From Basidiobolus meristosporus CBS 931.73 (lineage: Eukaryota; Fungi; Basidiobolomycota): a stretch of 64,000 bases of DNA. The notes beneath the pieces are model-generated. The model saw only the letters and a program-made list of their open reading frames with translations, was not told the DNA's origin and did not search any database. How positions within the stretch are numbered: position 1 is the first letter of the stretch; each line of letters opens with the position of its first letter. Location of the stretch: assembly GCA_002104905.1 (NCBI GenBank), contig MCFE01000322.1:1-64000 (forward strand), written 5' to 3'. The translations under genes were made by a program, and so were the position numbers. Below are positions 2,005-61,391 of this stretch, piece by piece.

Positions 2005-3850
2005 GTTTCCTGGCACTGTGGCACATATAACATGGCAAAAAAAAGAAGGTTTTTGCTCAACTCTGAGCTGGGATGGCCTGCTCCCACTTGAACCACGTCT
2101 GTTTAGTGATTCAGATCCACAAATATGATCTAGAATGGTCATCTTTGTCTTCTTTAAATAGCAATAACTTTCTTTGGACTGATTACTTCATATGCGGTAG
2201 ATTCAAAGTCCATTTGCTTCTTGATTTACCCAGTTTGGTATTGGACAACACCATGGGTTGTTTGGTAGCTATTCTTAGAGTGCTTCTACTGATTTGGATT
2301 GATACAGCTGCTTTTGTCTTATCAGAATATACTTGTAGAATAGAGATTGGCGCTTTTCCAGAAGTGAGATTCTCCTCAACAAGGGCTTTGATTATCCTTA
2401 TTCTCCTGATAGTTATTTTCAACCTTGAGCTCAGTTTCCAAGGCTAACTGATCTTCTCAGTGTCTTCAGAATTCATAAAAACCATCTGGTTGATCCTTGC
2501 ACCTTTTTCTTTCAGCTCCATAGACAGCAGACATCAAGACTTCTGCACTAAATAATCTGTTCCAATATATACTACAATATCTAACAGATCCTGTTGAAGT
2601 TTCAAGGCTCTTCTGGGGTTTCTAGCTTGAGAACTTCGTACAAGAGGCTCCATAGAACATATCTGCATTGCCAGATAGTCCAAATATGGCCTACATAAGT
2701 TTTGGCACCATTTGGGAAGTACCCTAGTTTGCGGTAGTAGTATTTTCCATTTTTTCTTCTTTTCTTTTTCTGCTGATGACCCAGGGATAATTCCCTTTGT
2801 GGGGTGGTTCTGGACTTCCTTGCAGGTGGGACCACGGTGTTTTTGAGCACAAGAGTCTCCATGACATCATTGTTCCAGAATATCTGACTATTTGAGAGTG
2901 AAATAATCAAAATTGGCATCCACTTAGATCATTCATAACTTTTGATAGAGTTGACCAAATTTGATCAAATAAACTGCATTTGATAGCTAGCTTCATCAAT
3001 ACTTCGGTATCAGACTCCAATATATCAGTATTTTGAGTTGCAGAACTTGGTGGTGACTTGATCAATCAAAATTCTTGTGATCTGATCCAGAGAAGTTAAA
3101 TATCACCAAGTGTTTTCTCCCACTGTAATAAGTGATATATATATAACAAGTATAAAGTACTATGTTATGTTCTGAGTGGCTCTTAGCTGTGTACTGACCA
3201 ACTGTTGCTTGGTTGTATACTCCAATCAGGCTTGCAATTATATGCTTCACTCCTTTGGCTGGCGGTAGAATCTTCATGAGTTGATTTTGCTAAATTTGTA
3301 TAATACTTTCTCCCACTGTTTTGAGACTTAAACAGAGTGATAGCACATCTAACAGCTCCATATTTAGCTCCTGGTACACTGGTCTCAGTATCAAAACACT
3401 TGATACAATTATAGCATTCTTCTAATGGATTGTGTAGTACATATCCATACTCCAGGTGGATATATATGTATTATATATCATTGGGATCCTTACAATTCAG
3501 GAAGCTTGTTTCTGAGATCTTTTTCCATCAGTAGATAGTCCAGAATGGCGGCTAACAGCTCCAGTATTTGCATTCTCAGCTGTATTTTGAGTGGCAACAG
3601 ATTTTTGGTAAAATCCTCCTCTGGCAATCATTAATAATGATCTATATTTTTTTTTTTGCAATTCAGGATAATATCCTATCCAAGAGCTCATCTAACAGTC
3701 AATTGGGGTCATATGAATACATATTGCAGTATATTTCACTGTAGATCTGGACCCTCAATTGCTGGAATTACGCAATTTTCTTCAGTAGTGGTAGAGCACC
3801 AACATACTATATTTCTTGACACAATTACATGCCAGTTTGATTGACTCTTC
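2005..3850. mobile_element. Unclassified degenerate CpG-depleted repeat relic
   Basis: Same low-CpG composition as the flanking TEs. Only broken short ORFs, no recognisable motif. Confidence 0.35.
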
Positions 3851-56353: not shown

Positions 56354-57852
56354 CTAAACCTTTGCAACACAATCCTTTGGAAATACCCCTTTGAACTGTG
56401 AGTTACGGCTTCGATTGTATCCGTAGAGCATCCCTGCGACCTCATCTAAAACCACAAGCTCGTCTCCCTTGTAAACAAAGATCTCCTCGTCGGTTTGTGG
56501 CACATGTGTTTCTACAGCCCGGATGACCAAATTTTGATCTCCGGTACTGCTTAACTTGGTTCGCGATGAAGGACTGTGTGACGCTTTCATTGGGCCTATC
56601 CAAGCTTGTCAACATAACATTCGAGCGTCTTGGAATGATTAAATAGTTTATCATACCAATTGTAGTAGTTCTTGATTTGAAGCGGAATACCAAGAATCCC
56701 GCAACACAAAGGACTGCTAAAACGCCAACCACTATGCCGATAATCGCCCCTATAGAAAGCATTTTGGTGGGAGTGGACTTTTGTGACCCAGTGGCTGCGG
56801 TCCCGTTCACTATATTCTCATTCATCGTTCCTAGCAAACCATTAGTCAGAGCCACATTGATGGGGATATGACAGTTCACATACCTTGGCACTGTGGGAGG
56901 TACTGAACTCCCTCACAACGAGTGTTGAATCCAGGCGGACGGCACGAGAAGTTGTTATCTTTGAGTTCACACTTGAAGCCACTCATTGTTTGTGTGTCTC
57001 CTGCAAGCTCGAGGTTAATTGCTGGGAGGGGCCCCGAAAGCATATTCCCCTGAAGTCCCCTAATAACGAGCTGCTTAAGAAATGTCTGTCGCCTTCATAT
57101 AGTTTACAAAGAATCCTTACAAGTAATTCATGGTTGTCTTCTTAACAATTGATGTTGGGATGCTTCCAATCAAGCGATTCTGATTCAGGTTTCTAAATAC
57201 ATATTGAACCATTATGAATCTATTGCATCGGCTGCAGCAATGAAACTCACTTACACATGAACAAGGGGAGCATCGAAGAGCTCTGATGGAATTTCTCCTT
57301 GTAGTTGGCATTCAGAGCAACGGCTATGATAGGAGGTAAATACGCATTTGAGGTGGTGTAATCACCATCAGTACTTACAAAACACTAAGTCGTTGAAGTC
57401 TTCCCAATCCTGGAGGGATCTGACCTCTGATAGTCGATACTGATAGATGGCTGGATTACCATTAGCAATAGGAAGTGAGCACAATTATATGAGCATGATA
57501 CTCACAGCTCTGCAAGGTACGATAATTTGAAGATATCATCAGGAATCCTGCCTCCAAGGTTGTTTCGCTCCAGCACACTGAAACAGAGTTGAGTTTAAAA
57601 GAGGATTGGCTCAGCAATGGTCTGTACATACATAGCCGAGACTCGGGTGCCAGCCTGGCAACTCACACCACTCCAAGAGCAGCAGTTTCCATTGTTGAAA
57701 TCGTTCCAGCCGGTTTGGTTTAACCAGCCGGGCCCGGAAAGCGAGGGATAGAGTACGTTGCGAAGATAGTTGCAATCGTCAGATAGGAACTGGGCTCTAA
57801 AGCCCGGTAAGGTCAACAAAGTTGCTGTTATCCAGAATAATAGCCAGCTCAT
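56354..57852 (-). CDS. Receptor-like protein: signal peptide, LRRNT_2, ~5 plant-type LRRs, Cys cap, TM, SH3
   Basis: WNDFNNGNCCSWSGVSC; GRIP/GQIP/GEIP/GSIP/GPLP repeats; TM IGAIIGIVVGVLAVLCVAGFLVF; AVETHVPQTDEEIFVYKGDELVV...GVFPKDCV. Confidence 0.85.
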
Positions 57853-58795
57853 ATCTAGTTATGATGAAGTGAATGAAACCGTTGCGTCTGAGAGAGCTGA
57901 ACATACCTTAAATAAGCGACCAAACTCATCGCATCGAAATTCATGTAAGGAATCGGGAAGCGATGTATCGATCTTCCACCGCTTTTTCGATATAGGTCAA
58001 TGACTTCCATACGCTTGGATTTACCAGACTTTCAGCCCCGCTTCTAATTACAGCGCATAATATGATATGTCTTTCAATTCCATTCTGCTCTTAATATTCC
58101 TGGTACATAACTGTACCTGTGGTAAACAAATGTCATCCTTCTAACTATGTCAAATTGATGGATCCAGATACTGCATTGATTTCCGTTTAGTCATCACCAA
58201 CAGACATCGTGTACTTGGACCACTGGTACGCACATGCATAAGACCAGATTTTCCTGATGGGAAAACGGCTACTATGGTAACGGTAGTATACACTTTGTAC
58301 ACTACTGATATCAACCCTGAGCATCCCTTCAGCCCCCAACCGTCGAGCCTCCTTTTCAACCCTTGCATGTATCTACAAACTCCCTCAATTCAAGCTGTCG
58401 GATCACTTTATGTACTGCAACAACGTAGCCTAACTATTACCCAACAAAAAGGGGAAATCCTGTAGCCTGCACAGCCAGCCTTAACTATATGCCCCTATTG
58501 TACACAATTACTTGTTCAAGCATGCCAACTATTCTATGAAACAAGCCAGGGCCACACAGCCTCGCATCTTGTTTACTACGATCGCAGTAGATTCTTACAA
58601 TCCACTCGCCCATACGTGCGCACAGGGCGCCAACGTCATCTAGAAGCCGAGGGATATTGCTCTCTCATCCCAAGATCCCAATACAATATAACCAATTTTC
58701 GACGGATGACATTGATTCGACTCTAATTGGCTGAATTTTATTTATACATTTCATTATTAAAATTTGCAATTATACAGTAGGCTGACTCTAGTAGA

Positions 58796-59818
58796 TTAAA
58801 TATTTTTAATAATAGTGTCTGCTGGAGCACCGTTGTAGGTAATCTGATAAACGGCGTTGATGAAGGGGAATTCTTGGATTTTCTCCTTGGTCAACAAATA
58901 GTCGTGAACCTTCTGAATTGTAATAGGTCCCTGAAGCTTTTGTCCGTTCAACATCTCGTTCTCAAGCACATCGAACGGTTTGCCGGTTCTGACAAACGCC
59001 TCACCGAGCATACGATTGCGTCCAGCATAATAGAGGGTGATCATCTCCGCAACACCACAGCTTTCGTAGAAAGTTTCCTTCTGCACCTCGGGATAGAACG
59101 TTTTGGCGAACTTGATGATCTCCATCAGTCCAATACGCACAACAGCAGCCTTGGTGTTGCCGCCTAGGTCGAGTCCGTCCACGATACCGGCGGCAATACC
59201 CAGAATATGCTTCAAGGCACCACAAATCTCCACACCGATGATATCGTTGACGATGGTTACTTTCAGGTAGGACGTGCTGAAGAGCTTCTTGAAAAGCTTC
59301 CCGTGCTTCTTCACCAGCGTGCCGATGGTGGTTTCGCAGAAGTTTTCCGAAGCTACCTCAGAGGCCACGTTAGCGCCGGACATGACGCTGACTTCAATAT
59401 CCAAAAGCTCGTGGATAATCTCCGAGAAAAAGCGAATGCTGCTGTGAGAAGAGTCGAGGCCCTTGATCAGCGAAATAGCTCTAGCGTCAGGACGAATCTG
59501 ACCGACCATTCGGCGGAGAACTTCCTTCAGAAATTGAGGCGGAATAACGAACACAAACACAGTGGCATCTTTGATGCATTCAGTGAGGTTGGAGTTGGCA
59601 ACAATATTCTCGGGAAGCTTCACGCCTGGAAGATACTTCACGTTCTCATGCTTGGTGTTGATGATGTCGGTCAGACTCTCGCCGTTGATGAACTCTTCAT
59701 GGACCCACATGTTTACTTTGTCATCGAATTCGTCATACTTGGTAACATTGGTACCAATGATCTTGGCTGCGGTGGAACCCCAATTTCCAGAACCGATTAT
59801 ACAAACTTTCTCAGTCAT
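58796..59818 (-). CDS. GPD1: NAD-dependent glycerol-3-phosphate dehydrogenase, divergent and intronless
   Basis: VCIIGSGNWGS, HENVKYLPG, ISLIKG, MSGANVASEVA, VEICGALK, ESCG, GRNR, GQKLQG. Confidence 0.93.
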   Translation of the reverse strand: MTEKVCIIGSGNWGSTAAKIIGTNVTKYDEFDDKVNMWVHEEFINGESLTDIINTKHENVKYLPGVKLPENIVANSNLTECIKDATVFVFVIPPQFLKEVLRRMVGQIRPDARAISLIKGLDSSHSSIRFFSEIIHELLDIEVSVMSGANVASEVASENFCETTIGTLVKKHGKLFKKLFSTSYLKVTIVNDIIGVEICGALKHILGIAAGIVDGLDLGGNTKAAVVRIGLMEIIKFAKTFYPEVQKETFYESCGVAEMITLYYAGRNRMLGEAFVRTGKPFDVLENEMLNGQKLQGPITIQKVHDYLLTKEKIQEFPFINAVYQITYNGAPADTIIKNI

Positions 59819-61391
59819 GAACAAAAATCAAGAGATTAATAAGAAATATAACGAGAGTGTAGAGGCGAGGTCGTGGAAGCATCCTTTATATAGCCACAGT
59901 AATCTTGGTAAATTGGCATTTTTTAAAACATCCCTATCCACTCTAGAACATCGATGAGATAGCACCAGGTGCATCAAATCGGGAATCATGTATACTATTC
60001 GCCTTCTCTACGTCATCATCATCACCAACGAGGTTGTTCAATCCCAATCACAATCATTAAGGCTGGAGAATTGGGCAAATATAAGGGCCTTTTGGGTGAG
60101 AAAACATCGATTATTCAGGGATTCTGGCTGACACCAGACGTCCCAAAACGTCAGACAGACAATTAGAAGATATCGCATTTGAGGGTCGATCATTGGCCAG
60201 GGCTACTTTGTCTAGGCATGAGGATGGAAATCACCTGCGAGAAGCCTCTAGACTGTCAACTTAGCACTAGCTGGGCCTTGATTATCTAGGAAATCAATAT
60301 CCTTATACCAAGTCTGAAAAACCTTAATAGCAAGGAGCTGGATGGACTCGTTCGTGCTTCCAATGGTTATTGTGAACATAAAACAATCACTGCTGCAAGC
60401 GCGATGGAAAGTCCACCGGCCTATCGGTAGGACCTAGATCTCCAATACAAATTACTACTGATGACAGGTGATTATTCTATCGACCTTCTGATTACGAATG
60501 ACTGCATTCAGAGTCTAAAATCGTTAAGCAATCGCCAATCGCAATCATGAAGCTATTGGTCCCCACCAATCGAGGCATCACGGTTTTTGACTAAAGATCA
60601 GTAAACAGAGCGCACTGTATCAAACATTGGCCAAGGCCCACTCGGCAATACTGGTTTCTGTAGCAGACATGAGATTATCAGCATGTCTTGACAATATTCG
60701 AGCGCGTAAGCGGGAACGGCGCCATCCACGCATGGTTCGGTCAAACAAGCTTCCATAAAGGCTTGCAATCTTGGAAGGATCCAAGGGGCATACGAAACCA
60801 TGTGAGTGCTTTTCTAGCTGAGCGATGGCAAGAGATAGCAAAAATCCACCATTTAGACCAGAGATTGAGCGCTATCGAACTTCGGTAAATTCGTGATTGC
60901 TACAATTCGACCGATCCCATAAATGGCTACCCGTCCAGCATTGCACTGTGTGATTACATTCCGTGATGCCATTGCGTAAGGCCATGTAATATCCCACGTA
61001 TCGATCACTTCCTAACCGTTCAAGTGGTATTCATGCAAATCGACAGAATCAATCCATTTCCAAAACTACGCGGAATCTTGTTTCTACCTCAGCTGCCCTA
61101 CCTTTCAAGACCCCAATTATAGATACACTAGCCTCGGATATTTGGAACCCCAGATCACACGACCTACCTGATGGGTGGCGGCTATGGCGTAATTTGGAAG
61201 TCAGTTTACATTTATTTAGAATCTTAACGATGATACATTTGAAGTCAGAGAGGTACAGATTAAAACGAAGCGTTTAAAATTCTCTTATGAACATAGTGAT
61301 TCTTGCGGATGAATCAGCAAGACATTGATCAGGCTGTAGTATTAAAAGTTCGGGCCGCGTGTAGAAGACTCTGGAGACGTGAGTTAGGGAG

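Follow-up and report, generated by a model that had tools for sequence, protein, structure and literature searches.

To our knowledge, fungi are the textbook case of organisms without LRR surface receptors. When 49 fungal genomes were surveyed in 2010, five proteins combining LRRs with a transmembrane (TM) segment were found and none of them had a second domain (PMC2939053). The first-pass annotation of the locus described here had called such LRRs essentially absent from the surface receptors of Dikarya. The survey agrees with their scarcity, but our host belongs to the Basidiobolomycota and not to the Dikarya. On the cytoplasmic side, membrane-bound SH3 proteins are known from fungi. Fus1 of Saccharomyces cerevisiae is a type I membrane protein with an O-glycosylated ectodomain and a C-terminal SH3 domain (PMC2132759), and this SH3 domain has an off-canonical PxxP surface with Cys37 and Cys54 and binds non-PxxP ligands (PMC5823434). 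For the fungal protein Sho1, PMC4411306 describes a membrane-anchored protein that carries a C-terminal SH3 domain as sole cytoplasmic module and scaffolds a MAPK branch.

At positions 57852..56354 of the minus strand of our window (the whole stretch of 64,000 nucleotides of Basidiobolus meristosporus CBS 931.73 DNA that was analysed), we found an exact coding sequence of 8 exons (1098 nt, 365 codons plus stop). It starts with an ATG at 57852, ends with a stop codon at 56356..56354 and is interrupted by seven introns of 53-62 nt each, all of which are bounded by GT..AG. The locus is K493DRAFT_339378, which is already present in the databases, yet uncharacterised: it is labelled 'hypothetical protein / SH3 domain-containing protein', and the deposited model misses the start with the signal peptide and leaves out exon 5. 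Neither tRNAs nor Rfam features were detected in the window. The gene consists of the following parts:

57632..57852, minus strand: exon 1, encoding the signal peptide, the N-terminal cap and the beginning of LRR1; phase 2 out
57852..57793, minus strand: signal peptide, residues 1-20, in exon 1
57792..57658, minus strand: N-terminal LRR cap, residues 21-65, with Cys27, Cys57, Cys58 and Cys65 and an NQT sequon
57506..57577, minus strand: exon 2, 72 nt, phase 2/2, encoding LRR1 (xVLERNNLGGRIPDDIFKLSYLAE)
57379..57450, minus strand: exon 3, 72 nt, phase 2/2, encoding LRR2 (HLSVSTIRGQIPPGLGRLQRLSV)
57255..57323, minus strand: exon 4, 69 nt, phase 2/2, encoding LRR3 (RCSECQLQGEIPSELFDAPLVH)
57121..57192, minus strand: exon 5, 72 nt, phase 2/2, encoding LRR4 (NLNQNRLIGSIPTSIVKKTTMNY)
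56884..57059, minus strand: exon 6, encoding LRR5 (GLQGNMLSGPLPAINLEL) and then the C-terminal four-Cys cap; phase 1 out
56971..56888, minus strand: C-terminal four-Cys cap (C-x8-C-x8-C-x8-C) with an NFS sequon, in exon 6
56657..56830, minus strand: exon 7, encoding the Ser/Thr-rich stalk (NGT sequon), the transmembrane helix and the stop-transfer sequence RFKSR
about 56756..56685, minus strand: transmembrane helix (SIGAIIGIVVGVLAVLCVAGFLVF), the top Kyte-Doolittle peak, in exon 7
56354..56595, minus strand: exon 8, encoding the cytoplasmic juxtamembrane segment, the SH3 domain and the stop codon
56593..56549, minus strand: juxtamembrane segment PMKASHSPSSRTKLS, 15 residues, identical in B. 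ranarum
about 56530..56357, minus strand: SH3 domain, in exon 8

The intron phases are, in order, 2,2,2,2,2,1,1 and the exon lengths follow the series x/72/72/69/72/.... The split codon of exon 2 is ATT (Ile), which occupies the first position of xxLxLxx. Exons 6, 7 and 8 are separated by gaps of 53 and 61 nt only, and split codons in phase 1 join the transmembrane exon 7 to exon 6 (LRR/cap) and to exon 8 (SH3) with the reading frame kept. The B. ranarum ortholog K7432_007347 (P0151) shares 74% of its amino acids with our protein and is syntenic, a glycerol-3-phosphate dehydrogenase gene adjoining both orthologs. It has an equivalent signal peptide and the identical QFLSDDC end of the mature protein. 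A second pair (P0180/P0070) shows the same architecture and has a JmjC gene as neighbour in each species. Between these four genes of two species, exon lengths and intron phases do not differ, and exon 5, which the deposited model omits, is present in P0151 and in both SH3-bearing paralogs. When the whole gene was compared with B. ranarum, pN was 0.14 and pS 0.79 (saturated), and constraint was seen in every exon. Since the ortholog and the paralog pair share architecture, exon lengths and phases and since pN stays this far below pS, the gene is not a product of chance.

The deposited model is wrong in two places, and one might thus suspect an annotation artefact in which a neighbouring secreted LRR gene and a small SH3 gene were read as one. 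We consider this hardly credible. The gaps next to exon 7 are narrow and both preserve a phase-1 codon and the frame, the order and phases of the junctions recur in the four genes, purifying selection acts on all exons, and exon 8 would otherwise stand there without a promoter or signal of its own. The first-pass annotation had named separate transcripts for the LRR and SH3 exons as the finding that would speak against its proposal; introns of 53-62 nt and split codons argue against such separation. Judged from the sequence, K493DRAFT_339378 is a real conserved Basidiobolus gene and a single transcription unit.

The layout that had been proposed (signal peptide, LRRNT_2 cap, five LRRs with GxIP, Cys cap, transmembrane helix, SH3) was recovered with all its elements, but the N-terminal cap scored 16.3 bits against Pfam LRRNT_2, which is below the cut-off of 20.7. 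This cap shows the Cys pattern C-x29-CC-x6-C with the motif CCSWSGVSC, and it aligns nearly gap-free with bacterial caps that pass LRRNT_2, such as that of P0010. It is followed by five repeats of 23-24 residues in register, each of which carries GxIP or GxLP and fits LxxLxLxxNxLxGxIPxx. Such tandem 23-24-residue repeats place the ectodomain in the plant-specific (PS) LRR class, and the deposited protein (P0001) passes Pfam LRR_1 with 23.6 (cut-off 20.6). In LRR3, the Leu9 and Asn12 positions of the repeat are taken by Cys. When the ortholog was compared with the PDB, plant LRR-RK ectodomains were matched with E values down to 3e-74, and the match to BAK1 formed a single continuous stretch (residues 10-184). 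The AF2 model of the ectodomain reached a pLDDT >90 across residues 30-185, and its top Foldseek matches were the ectodomains of SERK1/2, BAK1 and BIR2/3 (TM by target 0.62-0.83). For the C-terminal cap and the stalk the pLDDT was low. The four Cys of this cap are conserved in the family except for one that is absent from P0070. According to the model, the ectodomain is a small disulfide-capped five-LRR solenoid with the size and shape of the SERK/BAK1/BIR co-receptors.

In the AF2 model of the ortholog, a helix was found at residues 257-279, and the weak Pfam matches of exon 7 were all to transmembrane regions of type I proteins (Syndecan, Podoplanin). The signal peptide, sequons that make sense only on the outside and the positive residues behind the helix indicate, as far as sequence features can tell, that the product is a type I plasma-membrane protein. 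It has a Ser/Thr-rich stalk of ~25 residues and a cytoplasmic part of 86 residues. In this cytoplasmic part, a short conserved stretch rich in Ser and Thr precedes the SH3 domain, and there is no enzyme domain.

This cytoplasmic tail scored 20.1 bits against Pfam SH3_2 (cut-off 21.8). The family SH3 profile matched almost exclusively solved SH3 domains in the PDB (best E 1.7e-5), and the AF2 model (pLDDT about 90) retrieved SH3 matches only when searched with Foldseek, with rmsd values of 1.5-2 Å and TM by target of 0.75-0.87 for isolated-domain entries. The Atlas features gave an SH3 score of 0.92. By profile and by structure the tail thus belongs to the SH3 superfamily. We found no Pfam match to a kinase domain and the stop codon follows right behind the SH3 domain, in agreement with the kinase-less protein that had been predicted; this places the protein outside the LRR receptor-like kinases of the plant, oomycete or chytrid type. 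The canonical PxxP surface is formed by Tyr/Phe8, Tyr/Phe10, Trp36, Pro51, Asn53 and Tyr/Phe54 (PMC5823434). In our alignment, the SH3 domain of K493DRAFT_339378 carries E8, H10, M36, P51, D53 and C54 at these positions, so that one of the six canonical residues (Pro51) is kept, and the B. ranarum ortholog has A, H, M, P, D and C. The SH3-bearing paralogs keep Phe10, Trp36 and Pro51, and Cys54 is invariant in all four Basidiobolus SH3 proteins. By these residues, the SH3 domain of K493DRAFT_339378 does not qualify as a canonical PxxP binder. For this gene, it is doubtful whether the adaptor recruitment suggested by the first-pass annotation could use a classic PxxP pocket, since five of the six ligand-binding residues are replaced (E8, H10, M36, D53, C54). 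Trp36 is among the two most conserved SH3 residues, and an SH3 domain without it may bind nothing or act intramolecularly only.

Many SH3 proteins are components of actin patches, and the matches to our SH3 domain include the actin-linked proteins Sla1, Bzz1 and myosin I. Together with the membrane-near Ser/Thr-rich stalk and its several sequons, which recall fungal wall sensors, these matches would suit a surface protein with a mainly structural or adhesive role, or a sensor of wall integrity, whose SH3 domain merely anchors it to cortical actin patches. However, the stalks of Wsc/Mid2-type sensors are far longer than the ~25 residues seen here, LRR domains of the PS class are known to bind proteins or peptides, and the canonical residues that actin-patch SH3 domains use are missing. 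We therefore regard this explanation as quite unlikely.

The ectodomain of Fus1 is short and is not known to contain LRRs. A dedicated mating or cell-fusion factor, as a functional counterpart of yeast Fus1, would be concentrated where conjugating Basidiobolus cells touch and would combine an LRR domain for cell-cell or wall recognition with an SH3 domain that recruits the fusion and polarity machinery. The layout of a type I membrane protein with C-terminal SH3 domain is shared (PMC2132759), as are the degenerate PxxP surface and the same rare Cys54, and strong purifying selection suits a core developmental role. On the other hand, Cys54 is a single residue and possibly convergent, and a search with the tail of the ortholog (TM and SH3; shared 5-residue words) returned the ortholog alone. 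Taken together, such a role appears rather unlikely.

To these four genes a third ectodomain paralog has to be added, which lacks the SH3 domain and has a tail rich in PxxP motifs. The family so far comprises two paralog pairs in one genus and this SH3-less third paralog. The paralog count proposed by the first-pass annotation gave three ectodomain paralogs; no further one was found inside the window. At the protein level, LRR exons 2-4 and 6 are 88-91% identical to those of B. ranarum (91% for exon 3, 88% for exon 6), and exon 5 is 74% identical with a dN of 0.14 and saturated dS.

These data bear on the proposal that the protein senses microbes or a host. Basidiobolus lives in amphibian guts among bacteria, and a sensor of the innate-immunity type for bacteria or the animal host, with an SH3 domain that recruits a defence pathway, would fit such surroundings. 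The ectodomain has the class and fold found in plant immune and developmental receptors and co-receptors, and fungi are otherwise largely without LRR receptors (PMC2939053). However, each genome holds two SH3-bearing paralogs and one SH3-less paralog without expansion or clustering, and the single-copy orthologs are syntenic. Lineage expansion and a diversified ligand face, which mark pattern-recognition receptors, were not seen; such receptors usually diversify, whereas the LRR exons are 74-91% identical with saturated synonymous sites. Moreover, five repeats correspond to the size of co-receptors (SERK, BIR) and not to that of ligand-binding immune receptors. Because of the few copies and the strong constraint immune sensing is disfavoured, and we found no support for this part of the earlier proposal, which we consider unlikely.

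Since the LRR exons are so similar despite saturated synonymous sites, a conserved ligand is suggested. On the basis of this analysis, we favour, with a probability of roughly 0.55, that K493DRAFT_339378 is a kinase-less receptor or scaffold with a conserved ligand that works in a Fus1/Sho1-like manner. The concave LRR face would bind a conserved partner, for which a wall component, a secreted protein or peptide and the outer domain of a partner membrane protein are candidates. Once engaged or clustered, the receptor would hold its SH3 tail under the membrane, where the tail might dock cytoplasmic partners via its non-canonical surface, much as Fus1 and Sho1 organise components of polarity, fusion and MAPK pathways. 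An adhesion or co-receptor role would suit the five-repeat ectodomain equally well.

The GxIP repeats had been taken for a plant hallmark, but our searches showed that such repeats with this type of cap are not confined to plants. In a HMMER search of 1.84 billion representatives with a query that included exon 1, the best-scoring ectodomain relatives outside Basidiobolus were bacterial modular LRR proteins. These share 31-41% identity over ~150 residues, nearly gap-free from the N-cap to LRR5, and come from Bacteroidota, Chloroflexota, Cyanobacteria, Pseudomonadota, Acidobacteriota and other phyla. Unlike the Basidiobolus genes they have no introns, no TM-SH3 tail and a different C-terminal cap, and their modules recur many times per protein, often within giant multi-module proteins. 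Our tree covered 50 cap-plus-LRR modules, of which 37 were bacterial, 9 came from plants, 3 from Basidiobolus and 1 from a protist; the plant, protist and bacterial sequences entered all had a C-x-W-x-G-[VI]-x-C cap and 122 following residues. Here, the Basidiobolus sequences were monophyletic (100/98) on a long stem and were placed in a polytomy, not inside the bacterial modules. This position gives no ground for claiming an origin from either bacteria or plants.

The phase-2 introns of the Basidiobolus gene fall within the codon for the first Leu of xxLxLxx. The same split has been described for plant LRR kinases, where each repeat occupies one 72-nt exon and the introns are in phase 2 (PMC3050792). 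We rely on this report for the plant pattern since the two plant loci that we compared, one intronless and one with a 3-exon model, were uninformative. The match between Basidiobolus and the plant report is limited to the exact split residue. We rejected 72-nt phase-2 exons as a plant-only feature, as gonadotropin receptors and the ROCO genes of brown algae show the general pattern too (PMC11378527). A speculative and rather improbable scenario is that Basidiobolus retained a SERK/BIR-type ectodomain gene, or captured one from the plant/algal lineage, together with the plant intron position and phase, and then joined it to a Fus1-like non-canonical SH3 domain. This would have given a kinase-independent fungal LRR receptor system, possibly paired with the PxxP-rich third paralog.

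When metagenomes were scanned with an SH3-tail profile, 373 pattern matches were obtained and none was confirmed. An Atlas search with the whole ortholog returned plant and bacterial LRR clusters only and no LRR + SH3 cluster, which is weak evidence since this search covers clusters of 50 or more members. In the literature we found no paper that describes an LRR-TM-SH3 protein. The combination has so far been seen in Basidiobolus only and, apart from the uncharacterised database entry, is apparently undescribed, as the first-pass annotation had supposed. A culturable early-diverging fungus thus holds a small, strongly conserved family with a co-receptor-like LRR ectodomain and an SH3 domain in place of a kinase. 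If these proteins signal, they would represent a third way of coupling LRRs to the cell interior, beside the kinases used by plants and the TIR domains used by animals, and would provide a Fus1/Sho1-style membrane SH3 scaffold with a folded ligand-binding ectodomain. The exons with one repeat, 72 nt and phase 2, and the plant-like split residue, bear on how old this receptor module is and how it spread among eukaryotes, although the narrow phyletic range limits the weight of these considerations.

Among known systems, plant LRR-RLPs and animal LRR adhesion proteins are also single-pass LRR surface proteins that signal via partners only, but their tails are either short or equipped with other motifs, and we found none with an SH3 domain in the literature. 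Sho1 shares the membrane-anchored C-terminal SH3 domain as only cytoplasmic module. It differs in that it has four transmembrane helices, is not known to have a folded ectodomain and carries a canonical, PxxP-binding SH3 domain. Fus1 shares type I topology, a terminal non-canonical SH3 domain and Cys54, and this likeness is one of resemblance only; its Cys37 is missing from the Basidiobolus proteins. Plant SERK/BAK1/BIR proteins share the N-terminal Cys cap and five 24-residue GxIP repeats and gave the best matches by structure (TM by target up to 0.83). Their membrane-proximal region is a two-Cys cap or a Ser-Pro hinge, whereas the Basidiobolus cap has four Cys, and the Basidiobolus N-cap resembles bacterial and protist modules in its 'W-x-N-x-T-G-W' flavour. 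The plant proteins continue into a kinase, the Basidiobolus protein instead ends with an SH3 domain, and the host of this SERK/BIR-like ectodomain is a fungus and not a plant.

Exon 1 served as query in an exhaustive HMMER search, which together with a subsequent named search identified the window gene as K493DRAFT_339378 of Basidiobolus meristosporus CBS 931.73 (Basidiobolomycota). Its database labels are 'hypothetical protein' and, in UniRef, 'SH3 domain...'. Exon-by-exon reading yielded an eight-exon gene on the minus strand (57852..56354). The exons sum up to 1098 nt (365 codons plus stop) and all seven introns (53-62 nt) carry GT..AG ends, with phase 2 for introns 1-5 and phase 1 for introns 6-7.

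Exons of the window gene and parts of its translated product
57852..57632, minus strand: exon 1
57577..57506, minus strand: exon 2
57450..57379, minus strand: exon 3
57323..57255, minus strand: exon 4
57192..57121, minus strand: exon 5
57059..56884, minus strand: exon 6
56830..56657, minus strand: exon 7
56595..56354, minus strand: exon 8
Signal peptide: MSWLLFWITATLLTLPGFRA, followed by Q
N-terminal cap, cysteine-capped: DC...CCSWSGVSC
Five repeats of 23-24 residues: GxIP or GxLP in each
Cap after the repeats: four evenly spaced cysteines
Stalk: short, Ser/Thr-rich
Single hydrophobic helix, then RFKSR
Cytoplasmic segment: 20 residues, Ser/Thr-rich
SH3-like domain: C-terminal

The first-pass annotation had proposed an LRR receptor with a transmembrane helix and an SH3 tail at 56354-57852. 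Since every claimed part is present in the exon-by-exon product, its coordinates and architecture were exact. The deposited model (P0001, 346 residues) starts in an upstream open reading frame (MNFDAMSLVAYL...; region 57793-58010), lacks the signal peptide and omits exon 5 (LRR4, 57121-57192), translating intron sequence in its place. The structures of the ortholog and the paralogs support the 365-residue model over P0001. For database searches and fold prediction, single window exons and database proteins were used as queries, not the joined window product.

The B. ranarum ortholog (K7432_007347, P0151) comprises 367 amino acids, is 74% identical to the window gene and has both the signal peptide and the repeat encoded by exon 5. 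Both genes adjoin a glycerol-3-phosphate dehydrogenase gene. In the window this neighbor is an intronless open reading frame (58796-59824, minus strand, 342 residues), and its identity and the conserved synteny follow from its 340-residue B. ranarum counterpart, which carries the N- and C-domains of Pfam NAD_Gly3P_dh. Comparison of the window gene with its ortholog gave a pN of 0.14 and a pS of 0.79 (pS being saturated), and constraint extended to every exon, with exon 5 and the SH3 exon among them. The introns aligned with 61-72% identity, well under coding-exon constraint.

A profile search retrieved a second pair of like architecture, P0180 ('L domain-like protein', B. meristosporus) and P0070 (B. 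ranarum), both of which adjoin a JmjC gene. All three database proteins mapped to loci showed exon lengths of x/72/72/69/72/152-179/141-174/236-299 and intron phases of 2,2,2,2,2,1,1, identical to the window model. No further copy of the window gene was found within the 64-kb window. A third paralog, P0039 (K493DRAFT_378253), shares the N-cap, and its locus (L004:3001-4940 on MCFE01000310.1) contains unannotated phase-2 LRR exons of 72/72/69/72 nt (L004:3289-3360, 3420-3491, 3551-3619 and 3674-3745). These exons are missed by the deposited model, which is therefore mis-spliced. Behind its transmembrane helix P0039 carries no SH3 domain but a long tail that is rich in proline and contains numerous PxxP motifs, and it is an attractive idea that it might be a partner of the SH3-bearing paralogs.

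LRR and SH3 exons could alternatively belong to separate transcripts. However, no more than 53 and 61 nt lie between the LRR/cap, TM and SH3 exons, the reading frame continues through a split codon at both junctions, and the same junctions are found in four genes from two species. Thus, separate transcripts are very unlikely.

When the ortholog was compared with the PDB, plant LRR receptor-kinase ectodomains including MIK2 and FLS2 were matched (E down to 3e-74), and the BAK1 match formed one unbroken stretch (residues 10-184). An AF2 model of the ortholog, built from 30 sequences, reached pLDDT >90 at residues 30-185. Its top Foldseek matches were SERK1/2, BAK1 and BIR2/3, whose ectodomains comprise five repeats (TM by target 0.62-0.83). 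The GxIP repeats had been taken as a plant hallmark, but this repeat class is not restricted to plants. Beyond Basidiobolus, all examined matches of the exhaustive exon-1 search were large metagenomic multi-module LRR proteins, and single modules scored 75-92 bits versus about 55-59 bits for BAK1. A prokaryotic genome scan confirmed 145 ectodomain relatives in Bacteroidota, Chloroflexota, Cyanobacteria, Pseudomonadota, Acidobacteriota and other phyla; their modules were 29-43% identical to the fungal ectodomain over about 150 residues, and the alignment from N-cap to LRR5 was nearly gap-free.

The bacterial relatives (loci L005-L083, proteins P0002-P0038) consist, across many phyla, of repeated modules of a Cys cap plus 5-6 GxIP repeats. 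Some are longer than 3000 residues and contain as many as 19 modules, and one cluster member is labeled RHS repeat-associated protein. In LRR3 of the window gene and its ortholog (57255-57323), cysteines occupy the positions of Leu9 and Asn12 in the repeat (RCSEC). These two cysteines, which are absent from P0180/P0070, may form a disulfide within the repeat or a metal site.

In a maximum-likelihood tree built from 50 modules, the Basidiobolus sequences formed a clade (100/98) whose position was not resolved. Exons 2-5 encode exactly one repeat each, and each of the five phase-2 introns interrupts xxLxLxx within the codon of its first hydrophobic residue (I, L, F, V, L). In rice LRR kinases, phase-2 introns likewise split the first Leu of xxLxLxx, and 72-nt exons, with 69 nt also listed, were described (Sun and Wang, PMC3050792); intron phase, split residue and exon lengths thus agree with the window gene. 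Symmetric 72-nt LRR exons are also known from ROCO genes of brown algae and from gonadotropin receptors of vertebrates (PMC11378527), so that the pattern can arise by exon duplication. In the ROCO genes the exon begins elsewhere in the repeat. Assuming one randomly placed founding intron, we estimate the chance of an exact positional match with plants at about 1 in 72. This match is suggestive of shared descent with plant LRR genes but no proof. The module may have come from bacteria and gained its introns later, may descend from ancient eukaryotes or may have been transferred from the plant lineage.

Exon 8 scored 20.1 bits against Pfam SH3_2, slightly below the cut-off (21.8), and its language-model features grouped with SH3 clusters (0.92). 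With a four-sequence family profile, solved SH3 domains were nearly the sole matches (best: vinexin, E 1.7e-5; CD2AP, E 2.2e-5). Modeled with AF2, exon 8 reached a pLDDT of about 90 from residue 20 onward and superimposed on SH3 domains at 1.5-2 Å. The canonical ligand surface comprises Tyr/Phe8, Tyr/Phe10, Trp36, Pro51, Asn53 and Tyr/Phe54 (Brown et al., PMC5823434). In this numbering the window gene carries E, H, M, P, D and C, and its ligand surface is unusual. P0180/P0070 retain Phe10, Trp36 and Pro51. Cys54 is present in all four proteins and is shared with yeast Fus1, which was singled out for its cysteines at 37 and 54 and its non-PxxP ligands (PMC5823434). Of the cytoplasmic residues in exon 8, the first 15 (PMKASHSPSSRTKLS, 56549-56593) are predicted to be disordered, yet B. 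ranarum has them unchanged; the stalk outside the membrane, encoded by the neighboring exon, shows just 53% identity between the two species. This juxtamembrane peptide looks like a conserved linear motif and is perhaps a phosphorylation or docking site.

Taken together, the window gene encodes a conserved type I membrane protein with a SERK/BIR-like ectodomain of five repeats and a tail that carries a non-canonical SH3 domain and no enzyme domain. Such a protein would act as kinase-less receptor or scaffold; its LRR face would bind a conserved extracellular partner, and cytoplasmic partners might dock on the SH3 domain in the fashion of Fus1 or Sho1. The suggestion that it senses microbes or a host as an immune-type sensor is disfavored by the low copy number, the retained synteny and the strongly constrained repeats.

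No description of an LRR-TM-SH3 protein was found in the literature searched, and protein, Atlas and metagenome searches, each with blind spots, returned no such architecture outside Basidiobolus. A survey of 49 fungal genomes listed five LRR-plus-TM proteins, none of which carried another domain (PMC2939053), and a 2026 paper still reports just a few LRR kinases in chytrids and zygomycetes (PMC13618815). The range is narrow. In comparison with known systems, the Basidiobolus protein combines two known kinds, the LRR receptor-like protein and the membrane SH3 scaffold.
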